From contig OZ037766.1 of assembly GCA_964035545.1 (NCBI GenBank), forward strand, positions 9,104,722 through 9,168,721: 64,000 nucleotides of DNA. The letters are read 5' to 3'. This DNA comes from Bugula neritina (Eukaryota > Animalia > Bryozoa). The notes below the pieces were generated by a model, which saw nothing but the letters and a program-made list of their open reading frames with translations, did no database searches and was not told the DNA's origin. Shown piece by piece: positions 1-55,920 of the stretch. A program made the translations under genes and the position numbers. Numbering within the stretch: position 1 is the stretch's first letter; each line of letters opens with the position of its first letter.

Positions 1-650
1 TCGGTTATACTTATAGTTAATGTTATAGTTATACAATTATACTTATAGTTATACTTATTTAGTTTTATATTTACGTTTAGCTTTAGTTTTACAATTACAT
101 TACGCTTACAGGATTACTGATTACTCATTAGACTTACTCTTAGTCATTGGTGATTAGTCATTAATATCACTTACACTTACAGTAACTCACAGTATAACTG
201 TGAGTATTGTGTTTAGTCATTATGATTATTCATTATTGTTAGAGTTACTACTAGTAGTAGTACTAGTACTAAACCTAGTCATAGTGATAGTGGCTAATAA
301 TTGCTCTATAATTAAGTTATACTTATACTTTATAGTTATAGAATCTTATAGTTATAGAGTAACTACTTACAGTTAGTGTTACACAATGACTATAAGTATA
401 AGTATAATAATAAGTTTAATAAAATTTAATTTTATTGTTATTAATTTTAATTATATGTATATAGTTATATTTATTGTAACATCGACAATATATTAATTAT
501 AATATAAATATAATACTAATACTAATAATTATACTATAACTAAGAGTGAGTAGTAGTAGTAGTAGTATTTGACTTAGTAATTACACGTACTAATTAATAT
601 TATGATAATGATTATTATTTATTTATTATCATTATCTTACATAAATATGA
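1..650. repeat. Degenerate 3/6-nt periodic low-complexity tract upstream of the DDX46 start-codon exon (probable 5'-most intron)
   Basis: Runs such as ttatac-ttatag-ttaatg-ttatag, ttacat-tacgct-tacagg, tactaa-tactaa and agtagtagt. The acceptor tgtag at about 1165 precedes the ATG exon. Confidence 0.8.
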
Positions 651-1214
651 TTAGATCAGCATTTAAACTTAACATCAAATGTTGCAAAAGAATTAATACA
701 AATGACAATATGCATACAGCTCTTTTCACTACTATTATTTAAAATTTTACTCAGTTTAATGATAGCATAAAATCTATGCTCTACCAGTTTTAATTTAAAT
801 TTTAAAACTTTTCTCTGTTTCAACATAGTGATACTGGGCATTCTGAAGTAAAGCTAACTGCCATTCACATTCATAATTTCATTGTTATAGCTGATATTTA
901 TAATCGTGGTTCCTAGTAGTAGAACTGATGTTAATATTTTATTATACCCAAACTTGAAATATAAATTTTACTTGAAAATAAGATTAAAGGTTGAGTTGTA
1001 CTGCAACTTGTAGTAGCAGAGAAATAAAGCTGTAGTAAACTTAGTAGTACTGGATTTGAAATAAATTCATGCTGCAATAGTATTGGCAGTAGCAGAAGTA
1101 TTGGTCTATTCTATGGTCTAGGTCAAAGATGTTATATTATGTTAATTTTTCATTGCCATTTGTAGAAAAAGAACTTTAAGTTTAAGGTTATAGTCAGCAA
1201 GTCATCAACTTAAC

Positions 1215-10729: not shown

Positions 10730-10847
10730 AATACCCTTCATGTACAGATGACTTGTGATTTGCTGATATTCACTACCAACACATAGCAAATACTTTTCAC
10801 ACATTTGTTTTGTAAATAAAAAATCATTCTCATTCTTTAGCTATATA

Positions 10848-12616
10848 CAGTGCTGTGAAAAAGTTTAAGGACGCTTGCAGAAATTTCTATGTATTTCTAT
10901 GTATTGTTTAATAGGCATTTCTTGGAAGTTCTTAGTATTTTCCTGCAAGTTCTATATATCAAAATGACCCTTAGAATGTGCACTACAATTTTCAGGTTAT
11001 AAATTTCTACTGCTATGATGTTTTCTACCTATTTTCAGGCTAACTATACAAGCAGCGAGGAAAGCGCAACTCCTGTGTTTTTATGTTTCCAAAGTTTATT
11101 GCTTCTGATAATCACAAAAGGCTAAACAGTGAAATTTTACTTTGTACATGACATCATGATACCATAAAGTATGACTTTCTTCCATGATTTGAAATCTGTC
11201 ATTTAGTTGTAAGCTTTTACATGGTGTCCACTTAGGTGCTGCGCATAGACAAAATGAGAGCTGTAAATCTTACTTCAGAAGCAAGGTTTGTAACAATTTT
11301 TTTTTTAACGAAGGTTATTCAGTTAGGAAAATATCTGAAAAGGTTGGCAAAGCAAAAACAGCTGTTTATCAAGTTATCAGGAATTTCATGGAGACTGGTA
11401 GTGTAGCAGATCGACCTGGAAGTGGACGACCAAGAATAAGCACACTCGGAGATGACAAGGTTTTCATTAGGGTCAGCAAGAAAAATCGCCATAAAACAAG
11501 TTCTGAGTTGGCAAAGAATGATCAGAATCGACAGGAACAACAGCTTCGACATCCCTGATAAGGTGAAGACTGCTGAGCAATGGTCTATGTGTCTGCAAAG
11601 CAAGAAGGAAGCCTCTACTAACCGAGAAGTAGCAAGAAAACCGGCTACGGTTTGGTCAAGGAGCATGGTAGTTAACAGTGAATGATTAGAAAAAAGTAAT
11701 TATTTCAAATAAATCTACATTTAATGTGAACAATCATGCTGGAAACTGTTTTGTTAGAAGATATCAGTATGAGAAAAATAACCCCTAATGTATTCTTACA
11801 ACAATTAAGCACCCTATCGGTGTTATGTTCTGGCTGGGGTTGTATAGCATCAAAAGGTGTAGGTCGACTCAGTAATTGCTCTAGAATGATGTTAATGCCC
11901 AAAAATATATAGAGAATCTCAATGCTAAACTTCTTCCAATCATAAAAAACTTCTTTTTAAATGGAATTAACGTATTTGAGGATGACAATGCACCATGCCA
12001 AATTGGGCAAAAACTGTTGAAGAGTGGATGAAAAAGCAGAGGGTCTCAACGCTTAACTGGCCAGCCTAATAAGAAATTCATGGTCAAGAATGGCTAAAAT
12101 AGTCTCTTCACAGAAGCCAACAACTAAGGTGACACTCATAGAGCCTGTAATTCATCAATAGGATCATGTTGTGACTGAAAACGAGTTGGAGAAGCTGTAC
12201 GAGTTGATGCCTCGTCGCTGCCAACTAGTGATTGAGAATAAAGGCTGGCCAACAAAACATTGATATACTAAAATTTAAAGCACTGTGTGTTGCAATGCTG
12301 CTATAATGTGTAGAACAAATTACATACAATATTTTTTTATGTTTCAAATAAAATATTCTGATATCCTACAGTACACACAAATTGTGAGAACGTTGAATAA
12401 TTCCCATATATGCATAGTATCTCATTATTTCACCCATATTTTGGAAGGAAGTGAAAAGAGACGCTAATGATTTAGGTAAATGAGATAAGGAGATCTTAAG
12501 GATCATTTTGATAGGCATCATGTCTATGGAAATGCTTTTGTTATGTCTTAAAATTAGCTTGGAATATTGCTGTTATGGAAAACAATGAGGCGTCCTTAAA
12601 CTTTTTCACAGCACTG
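10848..12616 (+). mobile_element. Tc1/mariner DNA transposon, full-length but decayed
   Basis: Perfect 27-bp TIR CAGTGCTGTGAAAAAGTTTAAGGACGC at 10848-10874 and 12590-12616, with TA on both sides. Contains an internal transposase remnant. Confidence 0.93.
11254..12263 (+). pseudogene. Tc1-family transposase pseudogene with multiple frameshifts/stops
   Basis: Fragments in shifting frames: EGYSVRKIS (HTH), ETGSVADRPGSGRPR, RKKPLL, GCIASKGVGRL, FEDDNAPC, LNWPA* and LYELMPRRCQLVIENKGWPTKH*. Confidence 0.88.
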
Positions 12617-12924
12617 TATCTCTTGTGTTGAAAAGTTTCTTTCATGATATATTGAAAATTGAGACTGCTAAATTTCAAGAGCAATTTATGAGTGATATAC
12701 TAATTGAATTACCTATAGCACATTTCTATTATTGCTGCTTAGTAGTTTATTCAGATTTTTTAAAATTCAGTAAGTGTTGATTGTCGAAGTGAATCAGGTT
12801 TAGCCACTGCTTCTGTCAAATATATAAGACAAAAGGGATATAAAAACACTGATTCTTTGACCCTGCTAAACTAAACAAGCGCCTGGTCAGCGAACTTGCC
12901 ACTGAAAAAATATATGCTCAACCT

Positions 12925-13173: not shown

Positions 13174-15150
13174 ATGGCTGCTATTGTAAGAGCCGGTACT
13201 AAACTTGGCGTTAGTAAGTTTATAAATTTAATAGATATGCAAACTTTGTAGCATTTGATCATAATAATGTACTGCGACTAATGTATTTTTCAAATAAAAT
13301 GGAGGTAGCAATATTACTAATACGTTCACTGTATTGTGTTATCTCGCTATTCAGTTAGTGTTTGACTTGGACTTGGAGTTAGAGTGTTGCTGTTAGTCAG
13401 TTGGGGTTAGCGTTACACTTACTGTTACTAGCAGACAACAGTGTTCGTGTTAGGAATAGGTCTCGGTTGCTGTTGGCCTTGGAGTATCACTAGACTTCTT
13501 CTGTTATTCATATTGATATTGAAAATGTGTAACAGTAACACTAACTCAAAACTGACTTAAACTGTAATCAGTAATGCCAATGGCTACCAGTACCAGTATC
13601 ACTGTGACTTAAAATTAATCTTATGAGTATGGCTATAACTTATAAGTAACTATGGGTATCAGTAGGATTATGATATACTGATACTCACTACGAGTATGAG
13701 TGTATGAGTATCACTATCAGTATCACTATGACTCAATCAGTCAATGTAATTGTATGAGTATGTCGTACTTTTACTTTTACTTTTAGTGAGTTAGTCCAAC
13801 TTTATTAGACTATCAGTATGAGTATGAGTATCACTATGGCTATCACTGTGACTTTTGTACTGACTATGTCTACGACTACTAGACCTAGTACTAACTACTG
13901 CTACTGTACTGCTACTACTACTACTAGTAGTAGTACTAGTAGCAGTATTAGTGGTAGTAGTAGCATTTGCAGTTCCATGTTCAACATAATCGACATCATG
14001 ATGTTGATATTTGCAGTCTGAGTCACTAGGTTTGTAAGAGTAAGGTTAGCCATTAGTGTAAACTAAAACATTAATAGCAAATGTCTAATGAGTATGGCTT
14101 AGACTATGAGCAAACTGAAACTTAATCTGTAAAAATCTAGTTTAGAACTAAGAATTACTGTTGCACTTACTTTTAGTAGCAGTAGCTCTAACAGCAATTC
14201 TGAACAAGCTGTACTTTTGTTTAGACTTCTAGTTTTACTTGAGTTAAAGTGGACTTTAAAGTTTAACTTCTAGTTTTAGTTTAGGCTGCAGCAGTGAGAA
14301 GCAGAGTAAAACTAGATGTAACTGGAAACGTTAGCCTTGCCTTTTGGACTTTACATTCTTTCTAAACTTCGTTCACAAATAATTATAGTAATAGTTATAT
14401 CTAATCTTACACTTCCAGTTTTAGTACTTACTGATCAGCGTAATAAATTAAAAGAGACCTAATTTTTAATATTTTTATCATTTTATTTTCAATTATTAAA
14501 TTTATTAATATGCTCATATTAATTTATTAAATTTAAGTAACTAATAAGTGAGTAACATTACGCCAATAACTTGAAGTTGCTACTAATAGTGATAGATATA
14601 ATATGAATGATAATGAATAAATAGTAATAGTGAATAAATGTCGGCATAAATATTTGAAATAAGAGTGATTTACGGGTTTTTTAGTCAGGAGTAAAAGCTG
14701 AGTAATGCATTGTGATTTTTTGCAGCTGTAGTAGAGGCAGCTAAGCCTCGATTAGCTAATGCATGGAAATACTCTAAAGTTGAACTGAGACCACCCGGAC
14801 CTAGTGAATGGGGTGCTGCTGCTGCAGAAGCTGGACAGTTTGTGAAATCTCTTACTACTGGAAAGTTTCTCCAACAGACAACCACAGTTAGTAATTCCCA
14901 ACTATTTACACCGAGTTTTACACATTGTTTTAAGAGTTAGGTTGAGTGCCTTTTAAAACCGTTATCATTGCTAATCATTTTTGTTGTGTACTTGATTATA
15001 GCAATAGATTAAATTTTGTGTAAATTTATTTTTCAGGAGGCAATGACTAATGCTGTAGTGATCGCAGATGTTGCATTTTGCTTTTTTATTGGTGAAGTCA
15101 TTGGCAGAAAGAGTTTGATAGGATACAACATTAAGGGAGCACACATGTGA
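13174..15150 (+). CDS. ATP5MG: Mitochondrial ATP synthase subunit g, 3 exons
   Basis: Exons 13174-13213, 14726-14886 and 15037-15150 splice in frame to MAAIVRAGTKLGVTVVEAAKPRLANAWKYSKVELRPPGPSEW...TGKFLQQTTTEAMTNAVVIADVAFCFFIGEVIGRKSLIGYNIKGAHM*. Matches the subunit g pattern KPRL..W.Y.KVEL.PP and the GxxxG motif GEVIG. Not in the ORF track. Confidence 0.93.
13340..14640. repeat. Degenerate 3/6-nt periodic tract filling ATP5MG intron 1
   Basis: For example agtatg-agtatg-agtatc-actatg-gctatc-actgtg-act, actact/agtagt runs and ttttag/ttttac/ttctag units. The intron runs 13214-14725. Confidence 0.85.
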
Positions 15151-24088: not shown

Positions 24089-24129
<41 letters not shown>

Positions 24130-24131
<2 letters not shown>

Positions 24132-24530
24132 ACTCTCAGGCTGTCACTGTCGGTGTGAGTGTCACACTCACTGTGATACTCATACTCATAGTCATACTCA
24201 TACTGGTATCACTATCAGTATGAGTATCGTAGACGTTAGAACTAGGCGTATGTCCATGGTTTACTGCCATAGCAATTTATCAAGGACATTACTCATTACA
24301 TTTACTGGTACCTGTACTCATGCTGACTGTCATAGTGACTAATAGTAATACTTAACTAATACTAATAGTAATAGTAATACTAATAGTATTAGTTATTTAT
24401 TTTTAGTGAATGCCTATTACTATTAGTATTACATTTACTACTAGTATTGCAAATTTACTGTTGCCAATATGAATATAGAAATTCAAATTCAATTTGGAAT
24501 AGGCCATAGGCATAGCCATTAGATTAATAA
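24130..24530. repeat. Degenerate 3/6-nt periodic tract in intron 1 of the SYCE2-like gene
   Basis: atactc-atactc-atagtc-atactc-atactg-gtatc-actatc-agtatg-agtatc and actaat-agtaat-agtaat-actaat. Confidence 0.8.
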
Positions 24531-24881
24531 TAACTGTACATTTATGTTCAGTTGATAAATTTTCAATAAAAAAGCTTGCTAAAGTGTTGCTTCATGTTCT
24601 TAATCTTATCAGAAAAATTCAATTTTATGCTATTTTGATTTTAGATCAAAAAATTTATATAAATTAGATATGTGAATATATTATATATATAATTTTATGC
24701 TACATAAATGATAAATTACTATTAGGTGCATGTGGGCATGCTAGCATTATCACATTGATGATTGATATAAATGAGTAAAATGGCATTTTTTTTTAAATTT
24801 TGGGCTCAGTAATATCCTTCTATCTTTAAAACCTAGTTGTTTCAAATTATAGGTTGATGATTATAATTATTCAGCATTGCT

Positions 24882-31499: not shown

Positions 31500-31712
31500 G
31501 ATTATCACTATTACTATAAGTATAAGTATAAATAGAACTGTATTAGTATTTAAACATTATTATTATATGACTAGGTATACAATAAAAACTAACTTCAAGT
31601 ATCGGTATGACTATCATGATGAGTCACTTGAGTGAACAGAGTATGAGTAGCAGCATTTGTAAAACCATCATATAAAGATTATCATCAGTATTACTATTAT
31701 TAGTATTAGTAT
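31500..31712. repeat. Periodic tract, distal part (CIAO1 intron 1, beyond the LINE 3' end)
   Basis: attatc-actatt-actata-agtata-agtata, agtatg-agtagc and ttagta-ttagta. Confidence 0.65.
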
Positions 31713-32033
31713 TCTCATCTCATCTCATCTCATCTAATTAATCTCACTCGGAGCGCTTTGGCTCCTTTATCGAGATGCAGTGGTGTATGAACAATTGTTT
31801 AGATTATCAGTAGTAAGGAAGAAAACTATTTTGTCTACGAGATAAGAATATAGTTAATTATGCTTCGATTCAAAGCTCAATAGCTAGCTACTGCCAGGAG
31901 AGAAAGAAAAAAGAAAGAGAAAAAAAAAAAAAAAGTAAATAAATAAATAGATATACACCGCACAGCTTCAGATGATATAAAGCAGAGTCGATGTTAAGTG
32001 CTTATAATCAGTTAGGCAAAGCAGCTAGAATCA

Positions 32034-34781
32034 TTAGAAAAGTTTATGGATGCGATGTTTATATGAATGTTTGGCAGTTTTGGTATTGATATTGCCCTTA
32101 ATAGCACCATGTCTGGTATTGTGAGACTCTGCAAAATGAAGGGAGAACCGGTCTTGGTCTATAGCGGCACTACCAGAAAGCATACGAAAGTACATTTTTT
32201 GGTCTGCATTGTCACGTCTTTGTGCAAGGCTATCCCAATTAGAATTTGTCATGAGCTCAGTTATATGATTTCGTTTTCTCTTACAGAATGTCCACCTGAA
32301 GGCTTTTCTATTTATACCTTCTATGATGTTGATGTTTTTCAATTTAAATGGAGACCAGGTGTGGGTCGCAAATTCTAGTATAGGGCGACAGACTGTTTTA
32401 TAAGCTATGGCTCTGGTTTTACTTTTAGCCTTTTTTAGACAGCGCATCAGCATGTGTAATAATTTATTAGCTTTTGAGCAAATGTTTATTATATGTTGAT
32501 CGAATGACAGTTTATTATCAATCGTGACACCAAGGTATAATACTTTGTCAACACATTGTAAGGGGTCATTATTCATGCTGTATTGAGACACTAGAGGATT
32601 TACAGTGGAGCGTTGAATTGTCATATGCTCACATTTATTTATATTGAACTTCATCTGAGAACTGTCTGCCCAAGTTATAAGATGGTCTAAGTCATTCTGA
32701 AATAAACTAGAATCAGCAGGTGTTGTGATTGGTTTGTACAACAAGGAATTATCTGCATATAGTTTAAGCTTGCTGTTGGCTACCGCAGAGTGCATGTCAT
32801 TTATGTACACATTAAATAACAATGGTCCTAATACACTGCCTTGGGGCACTCCTGAGGTCACATGTCTAGTGGCCGATTTGACGTTGTTGACACAGACTGA
32901 AAGAAGACGGTTCTGAAGCCATGAAAAAATCCATTTGACAGTTTTATCAGCTATTCCGATATTTAGCAGTTTAACCTGTAGTTTATGGTGCGACACAACG
33001 TCAAAGGCCTTTGAAAAATCCAAGACAGCGAGATCAACCGGTATCATTTCGTCAAAAAAATCTATAAATTCACTCACTGTATTCAACAACTGAGTATCGC
33101 AGCCATGATTTGTCCTGAAACCATGTTGGTGTGGGTAAAACAGGTCATTTGATTCGAGGAAACAAGTGATATTATGTGATACGATATGCTCGAAGATTTT
33201 GGATATGATAGAAGTGAGTGATATTGGCCTGTAATTCAGCGGGTCTGTACGACTTCCTTTCTTGAAGATCGGTACAATGTTTGCTGTTTTCCAGTTTTGT
33301 GGTGTCTGAGATGTATCGTAGAAGTACTGAAAAACTTTTGTCAGGGGCTCATATATATAATGTGCAAGATATTTTAGAAGTGCAGGAGAAAGCTCATCTG
33401 GGCCAGCACCTTTTCGTGGATCGAGTTTGGTGAGCTGTGTTAGGACTCCCCGAGGATCAAATTGTATAGGAGATGATATAGTTTGAGGTGGAATGCAGGG
33501 AGGGATATTACCATCATCAATAGAAAACACAGAAGCAAAGGAGTCCGCAAAAGATTCAGCTATAGCAGTATTGTTGTTAGGGGGGATGTTGTCTAGTTGG
33601 CGTACAGTATTTGAGCTGCCCTTTTTACTTGCTATGAACCGATAAAGAGGTTTTGAATCACCCTGCTCTAATGTATTGCATATGTGTTTGTTTATATAAT
33701 TATTATAGTCCCTGTTACACAATTTCTTGCAGTACCGGGACTGGGTGGCATGTTTTAAAATGTTGTGCGGGGTGCGATCGTTAAGGCAAGCTAGGTGGAG
33801 GTGTTTTCTTTTTCTGATCTCACTTTTAGTTTCTTGGGATATCCAGAGTTTTGATTTTTTCTTTCTAAATTTGTATGGGATATTGGAATGGGCTACCTGA
33901 AGTATTCCAGATTTGAGATTATGCCATAACTGTTCAGCGCTACATTTCTTAGAGATATCTGAGGTGATTTTACAATGTAGGGAGTAACAGTCCACGGTGA
34001 TGTTCGTTATGTCTGCCTTTTCAAACTGCCAATATGGCTTTGGTTTGGTTAGGGATGCTGTCCTTTTAATAACATTATCCGCCAACACATTGAAATTGAT
34101 AATAAAATGGTCAGAGCAGGATGACTCAACTCGGGGGTTAGTGGTAGTTACATTTGTAACAACTAGATCAAGCGTATTACCTTTGTCGTGAGTAGGTTTA
34201 TTGATAGCCTGAGAAAGATTATTCGAAATTATAAAATCTACGAACAATTGATGCAAGTTAGTTTCTCTAGTTGTTTTAAGTACAGGCCTGCTACTATCAT
34301 TCCAGTCAATGTCAGGTAGGTTAAAATCCCCAACCATAACAATGTTCGGATTGGTTTGATCATAATACCAATTTACTATATCTTCTACTTGTTTTATACA
34401 GGGTCTACGGTAATAGCATGCAATAGTGAAAGAGTATCCACAGATTGATAAGTCAAGGGCAATGATTTCCCCAGGGTGTGAGACATTGATTCTACTAACA
34501 ACAAAGGGACATTTATTGGATAGGCCTATAAGGACTCCACCTCCACGTCCTAGTCCGTCAGTTCGATCACGCCGGTACAGGGTGTAGTCTCTGGATAACT
34601 CATTATCGGAAACTGATGAATCTAGTTTTGTTTCACATAAGCAAAAGATATCTGGCGATTGCTGATCTAGTAGCATGGAAAGTTCATGTATTTTACCCCT
34701 GATACCATTACAATTCCAAGATATTACTTTTAACTCTTTTTGTTCTGCCATGATAGTTGAGTTGGACAGGTTAGTTAGCAT
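32034..34781 (-). CDS. LINE ORF2: apurinic-like endonuclease plus reverse transcriptase (915 aa; YADD reads YADN)
   Basis: APE motifs SWNCNG, CLCETKL, GGGVLI, VGDFNLP, LDLVVT and SDH. RT motifs KGAGPDEL, NYRPISLTS, QHGFR, LDFSKAFD, GVPQGSVLGPLLF, YADNS and YLGVTID. Confidence 0.93.
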   Translation of the reverse strand: MLTNLSNSTIMAEQKELKVISWNCNGIRGKIHELSMLLDQQSPDIFCLCETKLDSSVSDNELSRDYTLYRRDRTDGLGRGGGVLIGLSNKCPFVVSRINVSHPGEIIALDLSICGYSFTIACYYRRPCIKQVEDIVNWYYDQTNPNIVMVGDFNLPDIDWNDSSRPVLKTTRETNLHQLFVDFIISNNLSQAINKPTHDKGNTLDLVVTNVTTTNPRVESSCSDHFIINFNVLADNVIKRTASLTKPKPYWQFEKADITNITVDCYSLHCKITSDISKKCSAEQLWHNLKSGILQVAHSNIPYKFRKKKSKLWISQETKSEIRKRKHLHLACLNDRTPHNILKHATQSRYCKKLCNRDYNNYINKHICNTLEQGDSKPLYRFIASKKGSSNTVRQLDNIPPNNNTAIAESFADSFASVFSIDDGNIPPCIPPQTISSPIQFDPRGVLTQLTKLDPRKGAGPDELSPALLKYLAHYIYEPLTKVFQYFYDTSQTPQNWKTANIVPIFKKGSRTDPLNYRPISLTSIISKIFEHIVSHNITCFLESNDLFYPHQHGFRTNHGCDTQLLNTVSEFIDFFDEMIPVDLAVLDFSKAFDVVSHHKLQVKLLNIGIADKTVKWIFSWLQNRLLSVCVNNVKSATRHVTSGVPQGSVLGPLLFNVYINDMHSAVANSKLKLYADNSLLYKPITTPADSSLFQNDLDHLITWADSSQMKFNINKCEHMTIQRSTVNPLVSQYSMNNDPLQCVDKVLYLGVTIDNKLSFDQHIINICSKANKLLHMLMRCLKKAKSKTRAIAYKTVCRPILEFATHTWSPFKLKNINIIEGINRKAFRWTFCKRKRNHITELMTNSNWDSLAQRRDNADQKMYFRMLSGSAAIDQDRFSLHFAESHNTRHGAIKGNINTKTAKHSYKHRIHKLF

Positions 34782-35755
34782 TAGAGTGGTAATGTCCAGC
34801 TGTGTTTTTATCAGTTATGGTGTTAGTCTCGCTGGGGTCCCGGAGAGATTCTGAAGCAATAGTATCAGAGTCATGGGCAAACTTGGACCAGCGGTCTGAC
34901 CTGGATGTTTTAGACTTGGAGTAAATAGAGCCATTTCTTACTTGAAACATTTTGTCTGAGTGAGTTGCTTTTAATTCGTCTCTCAGTTTTCTAAGTTTAT
35001 AGTCACGGTCACGCTCTTCAGGAGATAGGTCTGGTGTACAAAATGTAGATGCTTTATTTTCCCAGGTGTTGTATCTATACATAAAATCATTTTTATTCAT
35101 CTCAGAGTTAAAGGTGGCTTTAACTGGTCTTATTTTATCAGAGTTGGGGAGGTTCATGTTACGTCTACCTAGTCTTAGAGAATTTTAACAGAGACTCATG
35201 ATTGAAACTTAGAATATCACATATTTCCATAATCTCTTCCATGGTATTGTTATTCTCTTTTAAGCCATGTATGATAACACTATGGGCACGTTCTTCCTTC
35301 TCTTTTCGTTTCAGTTGGGATTGGGCATTGGTTTCCAATCTTTCGACAGTTTGTTTGATTTTAGTAAACCAGGGTTCTGTGTTATCGGGCTTGATTGTCT
35401 CAGATTTGGTCAGTTTGATATTCTCACAGACCAGGTTTTGGACAGAATCCATTTTAGTTTCTATTTGAGCAAGAGATTTTTTAATTTCATCACCGCTGAT
35501 GTAATGACTGAGCGTGGGCTCACATGTCTGGCAATACCATTTCAAGCCAGATCTAGAAAACAGTTTGGTGATATCTATAGATCGATTTAGGTCCTTCCAG
35601 TCTGGTAGACAGTTGGTATGTGTCGATCTCGAACAGAGACAGCACTCAAGACTGGGTTTATTATATGTTGACATTGTGCATAATGTGCATGCATTAGAGC
35701 TCCCCGAGGTTGAACTAGTACGAGAACTCTGACCACCAGACTCCTTACCAGCCAT
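34771..35755 (-). pseudogene. LINE ORF1 (PHD finger plus RLG/RP motif region) broken by a +1 frameshift near 35176
   Basis: ORF 35755-35165 has the C4HC3 pattern CTLC..CCLC..HTNC..WYCQTC. Removing one A from TCT-AAG-ACT joins it to 35157-34771, giving LKFSRLGRRNMNLPNSDKIRPVKATF..TPDLSPEER. Confidence 0.85.
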
Positions 35756-36289
35756 TGCAGGTGTTTACAGACCAAGAATAGATGTCAGATCAGGTACCCC
35801 TAGAAGAGGGAAAAAATTTCAGAGCGAAGCAACAAAACTGCCTGCTCCGAGAAGAAAACAAAGGAGAAAAAGCAGAGGCAAGAGAAATGCAGGGGCAAGA
35901 ACAACCAGCAAAGGACAAATTTATTTGCTTTATGAAAATTATTTGCTTTATGAAATGTAAAGTAGTTTGCTCCTAGAAAAGAGCCCAACAGAAAAAAAAG
36001 AGAAAATATTTGTAAGGGCAAGCAACTTCAACCAAAGCAGAAGCAATCAAGACAAAAGAAGAACGAAACCGAATTGCAAATATCCTGAAAGAATGCAGAT
36101 CCAAAATCCAAAATCACTGAAAATAAAAATAATTTACTCTGAAGCAGTCACTGAAAAAAAAAATAAATAAATAAAAAATAAATAAATAGTATACTCTAAA
36201 GTAGTCACTGTCTAGTGACCAGTATTACATCGACTGTGACAATTAGATCTACTAAAACAGGTTGAAGCTCCAAGAGTGAGAATTGATAT

Positions 36290-37110
36290 TACAAGTAACA
36301 CACTAGCAGAGTAAATTCAAAACAACAAAACTTACATTTCTCTTTTTGAAGATTAGCATTAGTGATTACAGATTAGTATGACTGTGATCATTGCTATGAG
36401 AGTGTACTATGTAAATGTTTTCTAACAACCTGAATCTACTCTCAGTCTCACTCTGAAGTTAAACTTAACAGTAGGCTAAGTCTTACTCTAAGCCATACAA
36501 ATAGGTTGGTTGAATAGGTAGGTTAAATATATAATTTAATTAAATTATTATTAGTATTACTATTACTGAGTATTAGTATTTCACTATTCGATCTACCTTT
36601 CTAAAATATACACAGGGTCTTACACTTACAGTAATAATTCAAATGATAATCATATTAATAAGAACATGAATATATTTATAAAAAGAAAGATCAAGACTAA
36701 AAATATAACTATTAATAAATAAGCATTGCATTTACTTTTAATTTTACTAATAATTAATTTAATATGAATTATCAATTAATATTATAATTATGAATATCAA
36801 TATGAATATGGTATACTGAATTATAATAACTGATATTGATGTCTATGAAGTATGATATTGATAACAGTCTTAGTCCATTACCTATGATATTGTGATTGCT
36901 ATTGTGGTACTAATTCAGTGATTGTCATTCACTCATTCACATTGTCATACTCATTGTCATTCACATCATTATTGTGATTGACTGAATCATTGAGTTTGAC
37001 TTTGAGAAAACCTGAAAAGGAAGTGACTATTCTGATGAGTATTCTTTAATCAAAATAAAGTTTCCACATATTGCAGAGACATAATAATAATTATAATCAT
37101 AATGATGACT
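36290..37110. repeat. Periodic tract, promoter-proximal part (CIAO1 intron 1)
   Basis: attagt-attact-attact-gagtat-tagtat, aatatg-aatatc-aatatg and attgtc-attcac-tcattc-acattg-tcatac. Starts about 100 bp after the donor at 37209 (-). Confidence 0.78.
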
Positions 37111-44465: not shown

Positions 44466-44510
44466 ACTGTAGGCTATGTGTATCAAATTTTGATGCACAT
44501 AGCCTACAGT
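44466..44510. repeat. Palindrome with 22-bp arms and a 1-nt spacer (one mismatch)
   Basis: ACTGTAGGCTATGTGTATCAAA-T-TTTGATGCACATAGCCTACAGT. Confidence 0.9.
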
Positions 44511-44797
44511 GGTGTCCTTTAAAAATGGCACAGGTAAAATGGCACAGTAAAAATGGCACAGGTAATGGCAAATTAGGTAAAAATGGCGCATTTCAATATT
44601 TGTTTGGGATTTGGGGTGGGTTTAGGGGTTTGGAATGGGGGGGGGTTTAAGTTTGGGGATTTGAGTTTGGGATTCAAGTTTAAGGGTTGGGTTTGAGGTT
44701 TGGGAAAATTTAACATCAGCGTGCCAGTTTTTTCTACATTGCCATTTATGCCATTATTACCTGTGCCATTATTGCCGGTGCCATTTTTACTTAAAAC
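44511..44797 (+). mobile_element. Non-autonomous element with tandem subterminal inverted repeats and a G/T-rich core (MITE/HINE-like)
   Basis: Left tandem GGTAAAAATGGCACA units, right TGCCATTTTTAC units, and a central TTTGGG/TTAGGG-like tract. Related copies at about 45293-45475, 46024-46110 and 51497-51677. Confidence 0.75.
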
Positions 44798-45292
44798 TAC
44801 ATACAGTGCATATTTACCAGTCATTCCTGGTCATTTAAATGTGTATGGAAGAGTAAGGAGCCACATATTATATACGAAAGGCTTTCATTCATGATTTTTA
44901 ATACAGAAAGTTATAATCATTTTACATCAACGTATTGGTGTTTTCTGCATATAGTATATACTTTATACCCTATGTATTTGTTTGCATATAGATCACAAAA
45001 GAACTAAAGATATAAATCTTGCATATAAACATACCTCTTCTGCATAACTATTTGATACATATAAATTGATGCATTACAGATTAAATGTAGTGAGCCATAC
45101 ACCAAACTTACCAATTTTTCACAGTTCTGTAAGTTCTTTGGTTTCTTTGTTTAGTCAATTGACTTCGCATTTTCTTATAGATTTATGATTTGCTCTTGAC
45201 AACAGAATTTTCTTGAATCATAATCTACACATTACAAATGTTACATTTTTAGTTATGTAAAGTGCTAAAAACAGGTGCAAAAGTGTTATATA

Positions 45293-45475
45293 GTGGGGCG
45301 GTGTCTGGTAAAAGTGGCACGCTTTCAATATTAGGGTTTGGGGTGGGGTGTTTAGGATGGGGGTTTAAGTTTGGGAATGGGAAGGGGTTGAGTTTGAGGT
45401 TTAAGGGTTGATAGTTTGAGTTTGGGGTTTGGGAAAATTTAACATTAGTGTGCCATTTTTACCTAAAATCATAAT
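45293..45475 (+). mobile_element. Shorter copy of the GGTAAAAATGGCAC / TTTGGG element
   Basis: ggtaaaagtggcac...ttagggtttgggg...tttgggaaaatttaacattagtgtgccatttttacctaaaatc. Confidence 0.75.
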
Positions 45476-46023
45476 GAGGCAGCTTCAAAATTTTCATATT
45501 ACTGAGAATTGCCATCAGCTTTGAGATTATACCCAACTACAGGTAGAAGTTGCTTTTAATCATGCTATTACATATAAATGTTTGTATTTTATCATAATGT
45601 TTGTCAAAAAAGAATGTTTTCTAAAGCTGTCAAGTAATTTAATATAGGAAACAGAAGTGAATTGTACCTAAAAACAAAGTAATAATGTGGAGTGAGATAA
45701 GCTTTCGTGAGCTTTCCCTATCCACCCTCCTATTTTGGTTTGGTGGTTAGGTGGTACAATAGGTATAACTTCACACTACCAAACAAGTTGACACTATAAG
45801 GTTCAAACTCCATAATTGACAAAAGAATCATTAAATGATTCTTTTAACACTTTATTTATAGCTCATAACTGTACATGCAGTGTGTGCGATATATGCAGAT
45901 ACTTTTGCTTTTAGTGTACTATTGCCTATTGGCCATTAGGATTATTAGCGTGTTCACATACTATTACCCTTTAGCACCACTATGACCATTGCCATTTCAC
46001 ATAGTAGTAAAACCCAATCTGAA

Positions 46024-46110
46024 AATTATGATTTTAGGTAAAAATGGCACAGGTAAAAATGGCACAGGTAAAAATAGCACGATATAGATGGCACAGGTAA
46101 TAATGGCAGA
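46024..46110 (-). mobile_element. Partial inverted copy (end) of the same element
   Basis: attatgattttaggtaaaaatggcaca is the exact reverse complement of tgtgccatttttacctaaaatcataat at about 45449-45475. Confidence 0.7.
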
Positions 46111-46830
46111 GTCTAGTTGAAGTTTACTCAAAGCTAAACTTGAAGTTATACTTAAACTTAAAGCTAATGATAACTTTTATTTTATGTTTCTAGCTCCATG
46201 TCTATTACAGCAATAATAATAATTATAATAATAATAATAATAATACTTAATAGTGCTACAGCTGCATGTTACTAGTATGAATTGTGGTAGTATAAGTATT
46301 AACTGAATGGTCATAAAATACTATAAGATTAAGTACCTATTTATTTTTAATAACAATATAAATATATTTATACTTATAGTTAATGTTATAGACAAAAAAT
46401 ATAGAATTAGATAGCAATTGTAAACACTAAACACTACCTCAGTTTCAGATATGTTGGTTTCAGTGTAAATGTAATTAAAACTAGTAACAGTAATTTTTAT
46501 AGTTGCACTCTTGGACTTATAATTATACTTATAGTTATAATTTAGTCCTATATTTATAAATTACAGTTAATGTTAAACTTAACGTTATAGACTTTTAGTT
46601 TTATTAGACTAAAATAATTATAAATATTAATAATAATATACACCTTTATATTACTACTAGCACTAGTGTTGCAGTTATAGATGATAGCTATGCTACTACT
46701 AATGGTTTTAGAATGGTATTAAAGTGATTGGTATTGTTGTACATATTGTTCAAAAATAAAATAACCAATCTCAATTAATATTTATCAATTGTGAAGTAAA
46801 GTAACTGTAAAGTTTCAGTTTAAAATTGAG
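46110..46830. repeat. Periodic tract on the SKP2 side of the divergent promoter
   Basis: aagtta-tactta-aactta-aagcta, ttatac-ttatag-ttaatg-ttatag, (aat)n and tactactag. Confidence 0.75.
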
Positions 46831-47240
46831 CAACAGTGCAGGAGAGATAACTCTACAAGCAGAACAAACAGTTGAGATAAAAACTTTCCAAACGGATTCG
46901 CTGTATCACGTATTTCTGAATCTTCAACATAAAAGACTGCTAACACTCTATAATATTATTATAGTTATTATTCTGTATCCTCATGTTTATGAAAGAATGC
47001 GCCAACAAACCATCAAATGAACTATCATTTATATTTATTATTAATCTAGGTGTCAGTATTTTTATTTAATTATTGTAAGTCATCAACTCATTGACTGTTG
47101 GTATCGTTCGAACTTCAATGACAGTGGCTCAGCATAGTGATGGTGCCATGCCCATAGGGCATAGGCATAGGCCATAGGGCTAGGCCATGGGCATAGTTCA
47201 GTTTCGTTTTTTCCGTGTAGCATTAGTCACTGTCCGACTC
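46830..47240. promoter_or_regulatory. Inferred bidirectional promoter core of SKP2 (-) and TMEM55 (+)
   Basis: Divergent gene orientation and a higher-complexity, CpG-containing core between two periodic tracts. The exact first exons are not resolved. Confidence 0.5.
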
Positions 47241-48180
47241 GGTGGTTGTTTACTATTACTATTAGTATTAGTATTACTACAGATTACTATTACTATTAGT
47301 GATACTGATAGTATTAATGTTTCTATTAAAGTTAATGTTTAGTTTTACGTGGTGAGCCGTGAGTGACCGTGGTGGTGATCTTTAATTTTATTTTTCAATT
47401 TATCTCTAATACTTATAGTTATAGTTATACTTATACTATTAGTATTAGTATTACTATTACTATTAGTATTACTGTAAATCAAAATGTAATACTAATAATA
47501 ATAGTAATTTCAATTTGTTTTTTTTTAGTTTTGGAAGTTAACGGCTAAACAATTTAACATTCAATAATTGATAATTATAATTTAAATTATAATAATTATA
47601 ATAACTTAATCTTATATTATTTAGTTTCAAAGGAAATGTGATTAAGATAATCATTATCATAACTTTAGAGTTAGTCCTAAAATAAACTCAATCACTTAAT
47701 GATTAAGATGAAAGTTATACTGATACTCATAGTGATAGTGAGTTATATAGATTAAGATTATCATTATAGTGACCATGATTACGATAACCTTTTTAACATG
47801 TCCCAGTCATAATGTTACAACTATTCATAGTCACAGCAATGATCAATCCCTTAGACATAGGCTTATTGCCAATATAAATATGAATATGATAATTTAAGTT
47901 ATAAAAATATAATACTGATTATCTATTTACACTCAAGTTCACTAATTGATATCAGTCACTGGACAGAATTTAAACTTTTTTTCTTCAATATTTTAAGTAA
48001 TTATTGATCATTTTACTTTTAGTTGTCAAAATATTCATATATTGTTATTTCTATATAGTACCCTTTGTTAGTTGACGTTGCCCATTTAATTGTTTGATTC
48101 AATCTTGTAATGTAATTAATTATACTTGGAAACTAATATCTATAGTTATACTAATGATGAATATACTAATAGTAATGCTA
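47240..48180. repeat. Periodic tract on the TMEM55 side of the divergent promoter
   Basis: actatt-actatt-agtatt-agtatt-actact, acttat-agttat-agttat-acttat-actatt and atactg-atactc-atagtg-atagtg. Confidence 0.8.
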
Positions 48181-48413
48181 TGCTGGCGGTAGCTACATAC
48201 TGGCTATCTTTGTTTCACAAATTATTTCAGGCATTTATTATTAGAATGATACAGGATGGAAAAGTAAAAGTACTAGCTAATTAAATTTTTTTATATATTT
48301 GTAGTGTTGAGTTTCACCTCTTGGTACTTTTTTAGGAAAAACGATATCTAAGGTATATCAATCAATACTACATATCGATATTTTGTTTGTTCATTTAGGT
48401 TTGAAGTTTAGCT

Positions 48414-51400
48414 ATGGCATCTTCATCAGACACAACAATCCTTATAAGACCAGATGAAGGAGAGGATGATAATGATGCTTGTGCTTCGCAGCCTCCTAAG
48501 TATTCAGAAATAGATTTGGGCACTGCTGATGGTAAAATAAATATGGTCATAAATATTCAACTTGCTAACACACTAATATGTCATATATTAGAACTAGATT
48601 TAACACCAATTGGAATTTATAAATGTATTAATTCTAAATGGCATTTTAATAAACCAGGATAAATCATGCCGGTAACTTTGTTGATAAATCTGGGTAAATT
48701 ATGATAATATTTTGGGTTGTATTATGTTGGCTAATTTGATTCAATAATATTAGCAAGTTCAGCTATGCACAACCTCAATCTCATTGGTTAAGATATAAAG
48801 TTTATGCAAGTTGCTGACTAGCATAACTAAGGCCAGTAGACGAAAACCTTAGGCGTAAAAGGTGTTTATTTTTGAAGCATATCACCATCAGCCAGCCCAT
48901 AGCCTTGCTGTGTGAGCCTAATGGATTTTTAACGTTTATACGTGCACTATCACTCTTTACTGAAAATACAATATGAAGTCTAAAAACTAATCATATTTTC
49001 ATGGAATCAAAATAGAAAATTTTCTGTTTTTTAGAAGGATCTACCGCTGGTGTGCCAGATGTAGTTGTTCCAGATGAGCTGCCTCCGCCATACTCTGCTA
49101 ATCTCTTTGTGAATTGCAGGGTGTGCCAAGTACCCATAAATTTAGAGAGAAGGCAACACCTCGCTGTAGTTAAGTGCGGCCAGTGTAACGAGGCCACCGT
49201 GAGTATTATTCTTAGCACTTCTTTAAACTAGTTTTTTCATAAAGCATCGTAGTGTTTTTTTTTATAAAGCGTAGTAGATTTAATGAAAAATTGTATTGTC
49301 TTGCAGAGGTTCTTTATAAATTCTGTAGTTTGCATGTGGAGCCCAGTTGAAGAATTGTTTCTTTACATCTGTTACAGCCCCTAAAGCCAGCAGCACCTGG
49401 GAAGAAGTATGTTCGGTGTCCATGTAATTGCCTGCTGATCTGCAATGCAAATGCTCGCCGTACTGCCTGCCCTCGTGCAAACTGGTAACATAATTTGATT
49501 TTGAAAAACATAAATTATATAAACTCTCACCAAAACTGTTCTGTATTGTTGCAGTATGGCCTGTTTAATATTATAGTCGAAGAATGATCAGCCTCCAAGC
49601 TACGGACACCTATGGGAGGCCCGCAGTAGTTGCTACAGCACCCAGGGCTGCTGTTAGAGCTAACTGTGCACACTGCAACCAAGTTTTTGTGGTTAGTAAG
49701 CTCTATATGGTAACAAATATTTTTGTTAAGTTTGTTGTTTTATTTCTTGAATACTTTCTATAGGCATTTCAATGTTTGTGACCTATGATTAGCTTTTGTG
49801 TAAATATGTTAGACAAGTATGCTGCGGCTAGCTATTACAACATAACTGCTCAAATATTTAGTGTAAGGCTTCAAAGGTCTTTCATCATCTAATACCTTTT
49901 CCTTTTACAACTTCAAGACTTGCTGGTTGTAACCAATGTAGTATTTGTACATTTTAAAAATACATTTCACATGATGGGGAGATGGCAATGTCCAAAAAGA
50001 AAATTGCTTTACATTACATAATGCATTTATAAAAAAAACCTTTGTCCATACACACAATAGAATTTAGTTTTATTGTGTACACTGGTTTTTGCTGTGTGCC
50101 TTTAGTAATAAGAGAAAGAGAAAAATTGTGATTGCAGAAGTCCTTTAAAACTTTTTGATTATGTCTTTTTGGAAGATTCAAATTTGGAAACACCAAGCAA
50201 CCAAAGTTTTTTTTTATGTAATTGAGCAAGATCATCTCTTTGCTGCAAACACAATTTATTAACTTGGGTATCTATGTTTTTGCTGCACAAAGCACTGTCA
50301 TTTTTGGTTTATTTTATCATAAATTTAAGCTAGTTATGTTTATTGGAAAGGAGTGAAAAAATTGTTTGCTTACTTTGTTGTGTAGTGTTGAAATAAATAC
50401 AAGTAAATGTATAATCATATTAGTCAGACAAGTTGGCTCCTGACTCCACATGCGGTTCCACGAAATACTGTCAATTCTGAGTTAAGGCTTTTGTTCTTTG
50501 CAATTTCTGAATCACTGAACTTAAATTTGAGATACAGTGTTCACTCTGTATCTTACTAAGCTACTAGTCTCAAAACATCAAATCGTGACATGGTAAAATA
50601 CGAGATTCAACTCATGGATTCGTAAAATTTGCTATTTTGTCCCTATACACACATACATAAGCCGCAAAGCTAAGGTCCAAGCTCTTGGAATTTCGTGAGA
50701 ATGAGATCCATGAGATATAGAGGAAGCAGGTTACTGGTTTTGAGTGTCAACTGTTTTTTGCTACTTTTCAGTTTATGCATAGTAGCCAATGGACTCAGTT
50801 TAACTGAATGTGTGTAGTTCATTTATTTGGTTTGCTGTAGGTACTCAAGGCTACTGTGAACACTAGGCTGGCACGATGTCCTCACTGCAATAGAGTGTAA
50901 GTAGCTCAACACGAATCTCATGATAAATTCTGTTTCCAATAGATTATTCTGTTAGATAAAAGAATTTATAACACCTTATCTGTTCTTTTCATATCAGTAG
51001 TTATTCACAAATTAGATAATATCACGTGCTGATAAGATATTATTCAACTATAAAGGTTATTTTGGAGCTCATATTCAAACATCTATTGATGGTGAAGTCC
51101 TCCTCCCGTGTCTTTTACTTCTGCAGTCACAGCTTGTCCACTAAATCACTGTTACAATTTTATTGGCAGCGTATCTTGGTTACACTCTTCTCATTGTGTG
51201 ATTTATTTATAGAATTATGGTAAGCTGCCAAGTTGAGCTAAAATAGTTATATTCATTCACATAATAGAAATTTTCATCTTTTACGTTCTTCAGATTGTAG
51301 GAACACTTGTTTAAGTTTCTCCAGACACTTTATGACATTCCAAGTCTAATTTGTACAGGCAGTTGGTTACTGCTGAAAGCTTAACATAGAGTCATAGACT

Positions 51401-53132
51401 ATCTCAAACATAGGCCCAAGAAAGCAATGTTATATACTTGGTTATGTAAGGTAGCTTCTATACTAGATGCTTTAGGTTACACCAATGAAATACTGCAGGG
51501 TCCGGTAAAACTGTCACCTTTTCATTATTGGAGTTTGGGGTTGGAGGTTTGGGGTGGGGGTTTAAGTTTGGGGTGGGGGTTTGAGTTTATGGTTTGGGAA
51601 AATCTAGCACCAGTGTGCCATTTTTACCTACTTTTCTATTTATGCCATCATTATCTGCGCCATTTTTACCTAAAATCAAACACTGCAGAAGATTTGAGAT
51701 GTCATTAGTGTCATTTTAATATACTACTAACTCTTTCAGGTCTGCTGTTGGCAATGGTTACATCAAAAGGAAGGTCTTGCTCTTTGGCATTATTGGTGCC
51801 GTGTTTTTGATTTTGGGTATTTCGACAACGGTGAGTACCCACTACTGAGCTATACTTTAATTTCGTCATTTGGAAACGCAATTAACTGATAAATAGCTTC
51901 TGTTAGCAGAAGCTTGGATAGTTTTTGTTTGATATCAAACTAGAAACAAGTAATATTATATACGTTATATGTGTTGAAAATGTGAAGTTTTGCTTCTGAT
52001 TGAACTAATGGCTACCGAGTTGTAGGTTTAAGAGACTTGTTCACTATCTGCTGTGTACCATGCAATGACCAGCTGGATTTTGTAGTCATTTATATTTACA
52101 ACTAGTCCAAAGCTTTACAATATTCATGTATACCTAGACAATATTTGCATTAGTCCAGATGTCAATTCCTGGATCAGCGTATACTGATACAAACATGGAA
52201 GGTTTAGATTTAGCTAGTTGGTTTTAAAAAAAACTATATTTACCAGAAGTTTTGAATTATGTTTTAAATTGATTGTCCTTGCTTTAGATCATTAAATTCA
52301 CACTATTTTGTTTCTGAACTGTGACAATTTTTTCATCTGTAATTTATGTAGGTCGTGTCGGCTTTTACTACATCTGGATACGGTGTTTATATCATTTGGG
52401 TTGGTAAGTATATTCATATACCTTTTTCCTTGAATAAATAAATTATAAACATTTACCCTGTCCAGGCATTTCTGTGCATATAGGTTGCTAGTAATCATAG
52501 TCATGACTCTAGAAAGCATATTAGGCATTGCAGTGTAATTATATATTACAAGCATAGTTTTATTTGCTAATTATATAATGTAAAGGCTTGAATAAATGTT
52601 TTGCTACAAAATGCATGCATGTTTACGTTTAACATGTATATTTTCTAAGCAGTTTTTCATTTAAAGACCAGAATGCTGAACCAAACAAGTTGTTGTATTT
52701 GTTGCTAAAAGTAATTGCTAGGCTAATCATTCCTGCCTTATGATGAAGCTTAAAAAATTTCTATAAACTAGTTCCTATCTTCATTGAATACATCATTTAC
52801 TAGGCATTTGGTGATATTCAAGAAATATTTCTTTATCAGTTGTTTGATTTTAAATTAGCAAGAAAACGGATTTGGGAGCAACAAAATTATTAAAATGATT
52901 ATGTTGGGTTAATACCCATCTGAACGATTTTTAAAACCAGCCTGTTATAGTTTCAAAATTTGCAATAGCACATTGAATTAGGATAGACTCTGCCAGTGAA
53001 AAAAGAGCTGAGACTGTGAACTGAAATGACAATGTTTTCTGCCTTGTTTCAGGAGCGTATATAGTGGGTGGCCTAAATCTGTTGAGGGCAATGCTCTTCT
53101 GTTGTCACAAAGTCAGTCGACCAATTGAGTAA
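48414..53132 (+). CDS. PIP4P1: Phosphatidylinositol-4,5-bisphosphate 4-phosphatase (TMEM55/PIP4P family), 8 coding exons
   Basis: Exons at about 48414-48531, 49036-49198, 49378-49484, 49577-49691, 50841-50895, 51740-51830, 52352-52403 and 53053-53132. Motifs [42 protein letters not shown]5R (CNANARR) and LARCPHC, then two C-terminal TM helices ending KVSRPIE*. Co-orthologue of PIP4P1 and PIP4P2. Confidence 0.9.
51497..51677 (+). mobile_element. Copy of the GGTAAAAATGGCAC / TTTGGG element in a TMEM55 intron
   Basis: ccggtaaaactgtcac...tttggggtgggggtttaagtttggg...tttgggaaaat...gtgtgccatttttacct...gccatttttacctaaaatc. Confidence 0.75.
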
Positions 53133-54299: not shown

Positions 54300-54450
54300 T
54301 GTTATAGAACTACGGTATATTGGATTCATGTGAAGAGTAATAATTACTCTTCACATGAATCCAATATACCGTAGTTCTATAACAATTTAACTTCGATACA
54401 ATAATAATACAATACAATTATTGTATTGTATTATTATTGTATCGAAGTTA
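54300..54450. repeat. Two abutting perfect palindromes (42-bp and 31-bp arms, 1-nt spacers)
   Basis: 54300-54341 pairs with 54343-54384 and 54388-54418 pairs with 54420-54450; both are exact reverse complements. Confidence 0.95.
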
Positions 54451-54799
54451 TTCTGAGCCAATGAAATTGCTCGGATAAACTAATTCACCCCTTGAAATGG
54501 GGTAATAATGTTTATACGATAAGCCTCAGCTTCAAGTTATATTAAACAACTTTTTAAATCATATACGATAACCGTCAAATATACATACCTTTTATTAAAA
54601 GTATGGATCCAAGCTTAGGTTGGCGCGAAGAAGTAGCGGTTCAATGTTGATCTTGATGATTTAAAATTGTTGAGATCTCGTTTGCCTTTACTTTGGCTAG
54701 AAGTAATAACATTAACAATAACAAACACGTTGAACTAAGATCTGTAATAACATTATTTTCATGATAAGACACTCTAATTAATCAAAATCTGTAAGTTGT

Positions 54800-55920
54800 T
54801 TTAAATTCATCATTATTAAAAATAAGTGAGCTTTAGTTTGTTAGTTTTTAAAGTTAGACTCAGACTGCATTCTCATTCTCGATTCTGATTCTCCACCTGA
54901 CACACTATCACATTCAATTTCATTTTCAATCATTGAATTTTATCATTAACTTTAAGTTTAAGTTTTAATGATTAAAAATAAATGACATTCTAATTGACTT
55001 TTATTTTTAGTTTTACTGTTAAGTGTTAAGCGAATGTGAGTATTTATTATTTACAATTTCTCGTAATCATGTCAGTCTGAGTCTGAATCATGCTCATACT
55101 GATACTCATACTGTCAAACTTGCGTGAGTTTTTATATTATAATCATAATCATATTAATGATCATTACTATTACTGTATTAGTATTATTATTACCACTACG
55201 ATTACCTTTGAAGTTTGAAAATATCGAACACTTGGGAACACTCAAACTTATAGTTATAAAGTGCCTCAATTGGTATAAAGTGTGGCGTTCATTTGACTAC
55301 AGTCTGAGTCTACAGGTTAACTAAGTCATTAAGTGAAAATTATGTTTATTATTTTTTATATGTGCTCCCTGTGGTGTTTCTAATGGTTCTACTTCTTGGT
55401 AATAATTAGAAACTACCATGATACACTAGTGACTAGTGAGTGTATGTATGTAGAAGACAGCTAGATCTAGTGGGTATTATCATAATTTAGTGATATTTTG
55501 TGATTTCATCATGCACCATTGCCGGTATTTAGTGTTTTTCTTCCTGCGGGATTTTCATGATAAGATTTAGTCAATGAGTCCTGTGTAATAATTTAAAAAG
55601 GCTGAATACCAAGCTGAAAACATGCCTTGGTTATACTTTCAATTACCATCATGATGATCAATATAAATGTCATTGTTATTGCTAGACTATTAGCATTTAT
55701 ATTATTATTGGAGTATTACTATTAGTAATAATTTTACTATTCGTATTGAATTTATCATTACACTTAGTATTACTTACACAGCTTCAGTTCGTCTTACACT
55801 TAAAGCTAAGGCCTAAGACTAATCTTATATTATTACTAATACTTGTCTATTCTATTGTAATTTTGATAGCAATGATCAGTATGGAGTTGTATATGGTGTC
55901 TCTTTTATTCTGTATGAATA
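54800..55920. repeat. Periodic tract in the CENP-C 5'-most intron
   Basis: Begins right after the donor GTAAGT at 54791: attctc-attctc-gattct, atactg-atactc-atactg, atcata-atcata, attact-attact-gtatt-agtatt. Confidence 0.75.

Follow-up and report, generated by a model that had tools for sequence, protein, structure and literature searches.

Promoter-proximal 6-bp tracts of Bugula neritina as probable scars of hairpin end joining

What fills the first introns of Bugula neritina genes with long, phase-locked and imperfectly repeated DNA? The question is posed by intron 1 of ATP5MG, which lies within a stretch of 64,000 nucleotides (hereafter the window; contig OZ037766.1, positions 9,104,722 to 9,168,721) in which, according to a preliminary description, each of eight genes has such a tract in its 5'-most intron, made either by a mutational process near promoters or by selection for a cis-acting signal.

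Six-base-pair tracts at gene starts

In nine of the nine named tracts of the window, sequence identity at a lag of six bases reaches 0.42-0.54, compared to ~0.29 elsewhere (z = 6 to 17 against shuffles), and exact tandem 6-mers, which define the repeat unit as 6 bp, occur at 10.2 per kb inside the tracts and 0.58 per kb outside, with A-S-T-A-W-T as a loose consensus. By the same count of exact duplications neither 3-bp units (17.0 versus 15.1 per kb) nor tandem 2-5-mers are enriched; of the 3/6-nt periodicity originally noted, the period of 6 is thus retained, while the apparent period of 3 disappears because it is a harmonic of the former. The ATP5MG tract, previously drawn from 13340 to 14640, extends from ~13330 to 14400, with mostly ordinary AT-rich intron between 14400 and 14640; it starts ~120-150 bp past the donor at 13214 and contains 37 complement-junction events, located at 13367-14396. 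Consistent with the suggestion that tracts begin near the first donor and then fade, the events of seven window genes, aligned on their first donors, are densest between +100 and +700 and have faded by ~+1000, and upstream of the unidirectional promoters among the donor-aligned genes they are absent; here first-intron status derives from splice signals and start codons rather than RNA starts, with RNA contigs confirming only internal introns of TMEM55.

Table 1. Tracts and associated features of the window (positions in window coordinates). The names SKP2, TMEM55, SYCE2-like and CENP-C are from exon reading; Pfam backs only ATP5MG, DEAD, BTB/Kelch and WD40, and spliced gene models were queried one exon at a time in protein searches.
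Feature	Position	Strand	Remarks
DDX46 5'UTR intron 1 tract	1-1100		starts ~170 bp before position 1; exon 2 = 1167-1231
ATP5MG exon 1, coding	13174-13213	+	from sequence; conserved in allele L031
ATP5MG first donor	13214		splice signal
ATP5MG intron 1 footprint tract (main locus)	13330-14400		lag-6 z = 16.6; 6/12-bp indels versus allele L031
ATP5MG exon 2	14726-14887		matches PF04718
KLHL first-intron tract	22630-23160		gene on minus strand
Tract in first intron of plus-strand partner gene	24120-24560		SYCE2-like gene of the preliminary description
CIAO1 intron-1 tract, distal piece	31500-31712		pushed away by LINE
CR1/L2-type LINE splitting the CIAO1 tract	31713-36190	-	PHD ORF1; intact endonuclease-RT ORF2
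CIAO1 intron-1 tract, proximal piece	36200-37110		donor ~37148
SKP2 first-intron tract	45890-46830		minus-strand gene of bidirectional promoter
TMEM55 5'UTR intron-1 tract	47110-48200		donor 47075, acceptor 48400
In-frame +6 complement-junction footprint, TMEM55 coding exon	48470-48487	+	single; polymorphic between lineages
Two perfect back-to-back palindromes, CENP-C promoter	54300-54450		arm lengths 42 and 31 bp; 1-nt centre in both
Tract at CENP-C 5' end, two lobes	54650-55920		donor ~54792

Together with 200 kb of flanking DNA, the window makes up a sample of 264 kb, ~0.1% of the genome (assembly, 216 Mb), of which 18 kb (~7%) is tract sequence. Nine further clusters are found in the flanks, eight of them where transcription-linked strand skew switches from minus to plus, as at divergent gene starts (p = 8e-5); these clusters adjoin CpG-richer DNA (p = 8e-7) and, by exon reading, precede Ral, cyclophilin, UNC45, TDP2, METTL9, a zinc transporter, eIF3g, TOM40 and others. 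The association of a tract with eight of eight genes accordingly describes the window and not every gene, five flank genes having weak or absent tracts: ATP synthase beta retains no more than a weak remnant, lying behind a young foldback insertion of 2.8 kb, and no tract was seen within the 200 kb of flanks at two CRAL-TRIO-like duplicates and two other genes. The tandem CRAL-TRIO-like duplicates lie in L016-L018, between 78 and 94 kb of the sampled 264 kb, and the single one of them with a tract is that nearest the promoter. The foldback element (L009:7711 to L010:539) has near-identical arms of 890 bp, lies ~100 bp past the first donor of ATP synthase beta and carries no scars in either arm, being too young to serve as a positional test.

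Assembly artefact, raised earlier as grounds for dismissal, is contradicted by Illumina contigs from other samples and by JGI/Logan alleles, in which the tracts recur; with ~10,000 contig pieces per run matching tract cores in independent Illumina contigs, the tracts are real and genome-wide. As stated before, they share no transposable element or satellite consensus, since matches elsewhere are restricted to low-complexity cores, on both strands and without shared ends. The window as a whole displays mosaic CpG depletion (o/e ~0.4) with weak CpG-richer promoters, as well as strong transcription-linked G and T skew, whose G/C component is lost inside the tracts.

Complementary junctions and differences between lineages

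The units of a tract are joined according to a rule. Of 976 mismatches that follow directly on five matching bases at lag 6, 70% pair a base with its complement (C<>G 452, A<>T 228), and, with the target written ABCDEF and complements primed, many polymorphic indels have the form ABCDE f' a' BCDEF or contain one complemented base. In a set of 24 tracts, complement-bounded cores of four and five bases exceed a phase-preserving null 3.6-fold and 5-fold (z 16 and 26, respectively), three-base cores and non-complementary boundaries remaining near that null. The junction order f'a' was counted 55 times versus 5 for the order expected from micro-inversion (p = 1e-11), which therefore occurs at chance level and leads to rejection of micro-inversion by template switch; moreover, the base following f' is e' (66), a (57) or a' (61) and seldom the forbidden fourth base (14), against a flat background. 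Direct cores of 4-5 bp with a net gain of 6 fit a 6- or 7-bp duplication, in addition to minor 4/5/7/8 classes. The strand symmetry of the tracts, already remarked upon, is explained by these junctions, because they are written as complements.

Palindromes with a 1-nt centre are four-fold enriched in the tracts (12.4 versus 3.0 per kb in shuffled sequence), with no corresponding enrichment of even palindromes. The double palindrome of the CENP-C promoter (Table 1), which is present once in the genome, is missing from alleles L036/L037 and implies a 4-bp overlap, consists of two 1-nt-centred palindromes back to back; it is the product of a single break, both ends of which were hairpinned and opened far from the tip.

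How tracts change was read from sister-lineage alleles (L031, L036 and L037, ~8% diverged), whose indels are unpolarised as they lack an outgroup. Indels in multiples of 6 account for 24 of 72 inside tracts and 16 of 219 outside (p = 3e-7), and no 3-bp indels were observed in the tracts of these alleles. Off-phase indels are as frequent in tracts as outside, with no sign of purging; substitutions amount to 0.072 per site in tracts and 0.088 outside; and C<>G changes affect 1.8% of C/G sites in both, a background rate on which point C-to-G hypermutation at A-S-T was rejected. Because substitutions, C<>G changes and other indels are all near background, the 6-bp events sit atop normal mutation, and the lattice shows no sign of constraint. 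Tracts also differ between alleles by large gains and losses; nine of 20 polymorphic +6 indels are exact complement-junction duplications, and two are perfect copies.

A pattern scan of metagenomes picked up ~30 loci (GC 42%) that belong to a single animal and come from two metagenomes of JGI; they are pattern-selected and thus no measure of prevalence. The best match with a name for the riboflavin kinase of this animal is from Watersipora, and the protein is 73% identical to that of Bugula neritina, so that, judging from this protein, the source is a distant bryozoan. In this second species the tracts lie directly past first donors and obey the junction rule (f'a' 38, micro-inversion order 5), with extra 4-, 5- and 7-bp classes and long palindromes; a long near-perfect one occupies L075:8150-8500 in a first-intron tract. 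No clear tract was recognised at the riboflavin kinase locus of Watersipora (L120; one gene) or in bryozoan contigs L121, L125, L126 and L032-L035, which represent one gene each and often leave intron 1 uncovered; contig L124 has a short tract-like stretch. The Watersipora riboflavin kinase intron contains a tandem array built from the 5' part of the next exon (L120:12600-13200).

Origin of the tracts

Any explanation has to account for the observed positional bias, ongoing net +6 indels, junction rule and order, 1-nt-centred palindromes and paucity of pure arrays. Very probably, the tracts are scars of hairpin end joining, whether started by a transposon or not; that they are, more specifically, serial insertion and excision scars of a promoter-targeting hAT-like element is the reading we favour as probable. 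The agent would be a mobile, cut-and-paste element with hAT-type chemistry, inserting 100-1000 bp past germline-active transcription start sites (TSSs) in response to some chromatin cue. Its target would be an AT-rich palindrome, of which 6-7 bp (ABCDEF) are duplicated upon insertion. At excision, each flank would be nicked one base inside and sealed as a hairpin, with the complement of the terminal base at its tip; opening by the host and end joining would then yield ABCDE f' a' BCDEF, ABCDE f' e' BCDEF or the single-complement form, all with a net gain of 6. By analogy with Ds, a symmetric target of 7 bp would account for the common single-complement class, whereas the double-complement class would require a target of 6 bp or a shifted nick, and the excess of A-C-T / A-G-T would partly be the hairpin tip itself (E f' e'). 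Every scar would recreate a good in-phase target, making the lattice self-feeding, and purging from exons and core promoter would leave presumably neutral scars to pile up in intron 1.

A search of the 264 kb and the alleles (~0.1% of the genome) for an element with a 6- or 7-bp duplication detected none, TIR/TSD scans giving ambiguous or lattice matches; the claim is hence that the process works like hAT excision, not that its agent belongs to a named family. The genome does encode intact multi-copy hAT ORFs, including three identical-scoring ORFs of 563 aa, as well as intact MULE ORFs; hAT copies are placed at C1:30462367, C3:28905230 and C5:1593917 of the assembly. DUF4371, which we assumed to be a lead for Blackjack-lineage hATs, gave no match when searched for, an outcome uninformative on hAT lineage. 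With a scar load of ~a million and very few resident copies, the favoured model needs excision to be very efficient, or else the element to be rare or extinct; and, given the 4-bp overlap of the double palindrome and the 4-, 5- and 7-bp classes of the second bryozoan, one family may be too few for all duplication lengths.

Other mobile elements were encountered in the sampled DNA. The only young MITE inside a tract, on the TOM40 side, is PIF/Harbinger-like with a 3-bp TWA duplication (L028:4419-4762; 344 bp, 97% identity, 862 candidate matches), and the flanks of its other copies look tract-like. A suspected missed gene between DDX46 and ATP5MG turned out to be a decayed Tc1/mariner (10847-12618) with TIRs and a TA duplication, absent from allele L031. 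At window position 53458, the sister-lineage allele alone has a 3-kb Academ-like element with TAG...CTA ends and a 3-bp duplication (L036:15333-18299). A dispersed repeat with G-rich internal tandem units, which we take to be Helentron/HINE-like, is found at 44510-44830, 45300-45480, 46020-46110 and 51500-51670, one copy being polymorphic.

Among the mutational processes near promoters proposed at the outset, serial transposon footprints are supported, and slippage and plain staggered-break fill-in are discarded because both give perfect copies and hence pure arrays. Genome-wide, only 183 of 5,161 four-unit arrays of the commonest spacer (3.5%) are pure C or pure G, compared to expectations of 12.5% for random choice and 83% for slippage, in line with the original statement that the tracts are not pure microsatellites; orientation flips reach 55%, where slippage predicts 3%. 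A complement rule with ~20% perfect-copy steps produces 3.5% pure arrays, the one-in-five proportion being fitted, and simulations match the tract statistics only with complement (hairpin) junctions and never with slippage, needing a tuned target preference to fully recover the dominant unit. Slippage as the main process is already contradicted, and cryptic microsatellites produced at promoters by slippage plus point mutation, or by template-switch micro-inversions, are very improbable: perfect 6-bp copies are enriched too, ~20% of steps resemble them and some zones contain simple trinucleotide runs, but the point C<>G rate is not raised and the micro-inversion order stays at chance, aside from the discrepancies in purity and flips. 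We consider scarcely credible that the tracts are footprints of the young PIF/Harbinger-like MITE, or of a 5-bp duplication with random C/G left by a transposon end. The family's hundreds of candidate matches at 97% identity, its copy inside a tract and the TWA present in many cores speak for this; against it, direct cores of 4-5 bp number 394 and 181 versus 89 for the Harbinger parse of 3 bp plus P-nucleotides, and a C/G remnant, fixed or random, is at odds with A/T junctions that flip just as C/G ones do and with a share of pure arrays well below that of random choice.

That the tracts are instead, whatever their first origin, a cis-lattice under purifying selection (for PATC-like licensing, as a protein-binding array or as an RNA hairpin scaffold) is improbable. 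Their near-universality at broadly expressed genes, the slightly lower substitution rate, retention in two bryozoans and tract RNA folding that beats shuffles in three of four cases are compatible with selection, yet this folding is alike on both strands, the lattice centre has no extra conservation, ATP synthase beta manages without a full tract, and neither the f'a' order nor the avoidance of pure arrays is predicted by selection; coupled with near-background substitutions, unpurged off-phase indels and large allelic gains and losses, this leaves the earlier idea of a selected PATC-like signal without support. The alternative suggestion of U1-site enrichment fares no better, GTRAG being counted 27 times in sense and 44 times in antisense orientation against a background of 23; U1 telescripting was rejected for lack of a sense-strand excess of 5' splice-site motifs, and a PAS signal was rejected as well. 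A more serious contender, possible although we rate it well below the transposon model, dispenses with the element: a domesticated transposase or host nuclease acting on promoter-proximal germline chromatin would make offset breaks with hairpin caps, for instance between sister chromatids or through strand transfer and reversal, and their end joining would leave the same scars. The junction evidence is identical for both, and the lack of a resident element in the search, sharp, one-sided targeting downstream of the TSS and retention, with duplications of varying length, in two distantly related bryozoans agree with an element-free origin. Its drawback is that 4-6-bp direct duplications with hairpin tips need fill-in between two cuts, which insertion followed by excision supplies naturally; we know of no host enzyme that performs such hairpin breaks plus fill-in duplication, and candidate active hAT families exist in the genome. 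It is conceivable, if rather doubtful, that, with mobile elements no longer taking part, a host hairpin nuclease is still writing 6-bp scars in the first kb of active germline genes, a RAG-like programmed breakage across the genome, possibly marking or diversifying promoters.

Relation to known systems

Footprints are an old candidate for unseen sequence change, but hard to recognise. If the hAT-like excision origin is true, scars usually met singly can give rise to an entire category of non-coding DNA, and the first introns of most genes, which seem to hold a kilobase-long record of repeated DNA breakage, would provide a sequence-readable map of germline-active promoters in an animal; a further prediction is that a hAT-like transposase, or a host nuclease, has an unusual specificity for promoters. 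The junction rule is a direct statistical footprint test applicable to any genome, the tracts are a free aid to TSS annotation in these bryozoans, and 5' exons receive two-codon insertions in frame from the scars. Searches of the literature turned up no account of footprint tracts near promoters, and the tracts would represent a known kind of scar, accumulated in a manner apparently undescribed.

Like C. elegans PATCs and promoter microsatellites, the tracts are periodic non-coding DNA linked to gene position; however, PATCs are 10-bp A/T clusters with demonstrated germline function and microsatellites grow by perfect copying, whereas Bugula tracts have a 6-bp period, are complement-scrambled and lack signs of constraint. 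RAG hairpins are blunt and give rise to even palindromes, unlike the tracts, where these are not enriched; and MULEs differ in that Muta1 excision is mostly precise and duplications are 8-10 bp. With hairpin-capped flanks opened by host enzymes, the proposed process would nonetheless be akin to V(D)J coding joints, Transib and MULE, the flank being hairpinned by hAT, Transib, MULE and RAG and not by Tc1/mariner or piggyBac (PMC5499845).

Footprints of Ac/Ds combine deletions with P-nucleotides whose centre is complementary to the base beside the transposon end, and originate from flank hairpins that are opened and end-joined (PMC5873905); hAT-type footprint sequences are also documented elsewhere (PMC1978519). 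As with Ac/Ds, Tam3, Hermes and TcBuster, a duplication is accompanied in Bugula by P-nucleotides centred on the complement of the base that would adjoin the element, and long palindromes appear now and then (PMC5873905, PMC1978519); the preference for TSSs is shared with the hAT element TcBuster (PMC3499496). The hAT5, hAT6 and hAT7 groups make 5-, 6- and 7-bp duplications (PMC12730594), the latter two being the lengths needed here, although no such element was found in the 264-kb sample. Known hAT footprints each record one excision from one donor site, with a duplication of 8 bp, whereas the putative ones of Bugula have a net gain of 6 and are stacked, up to ~100 per gene, at most gene starts.
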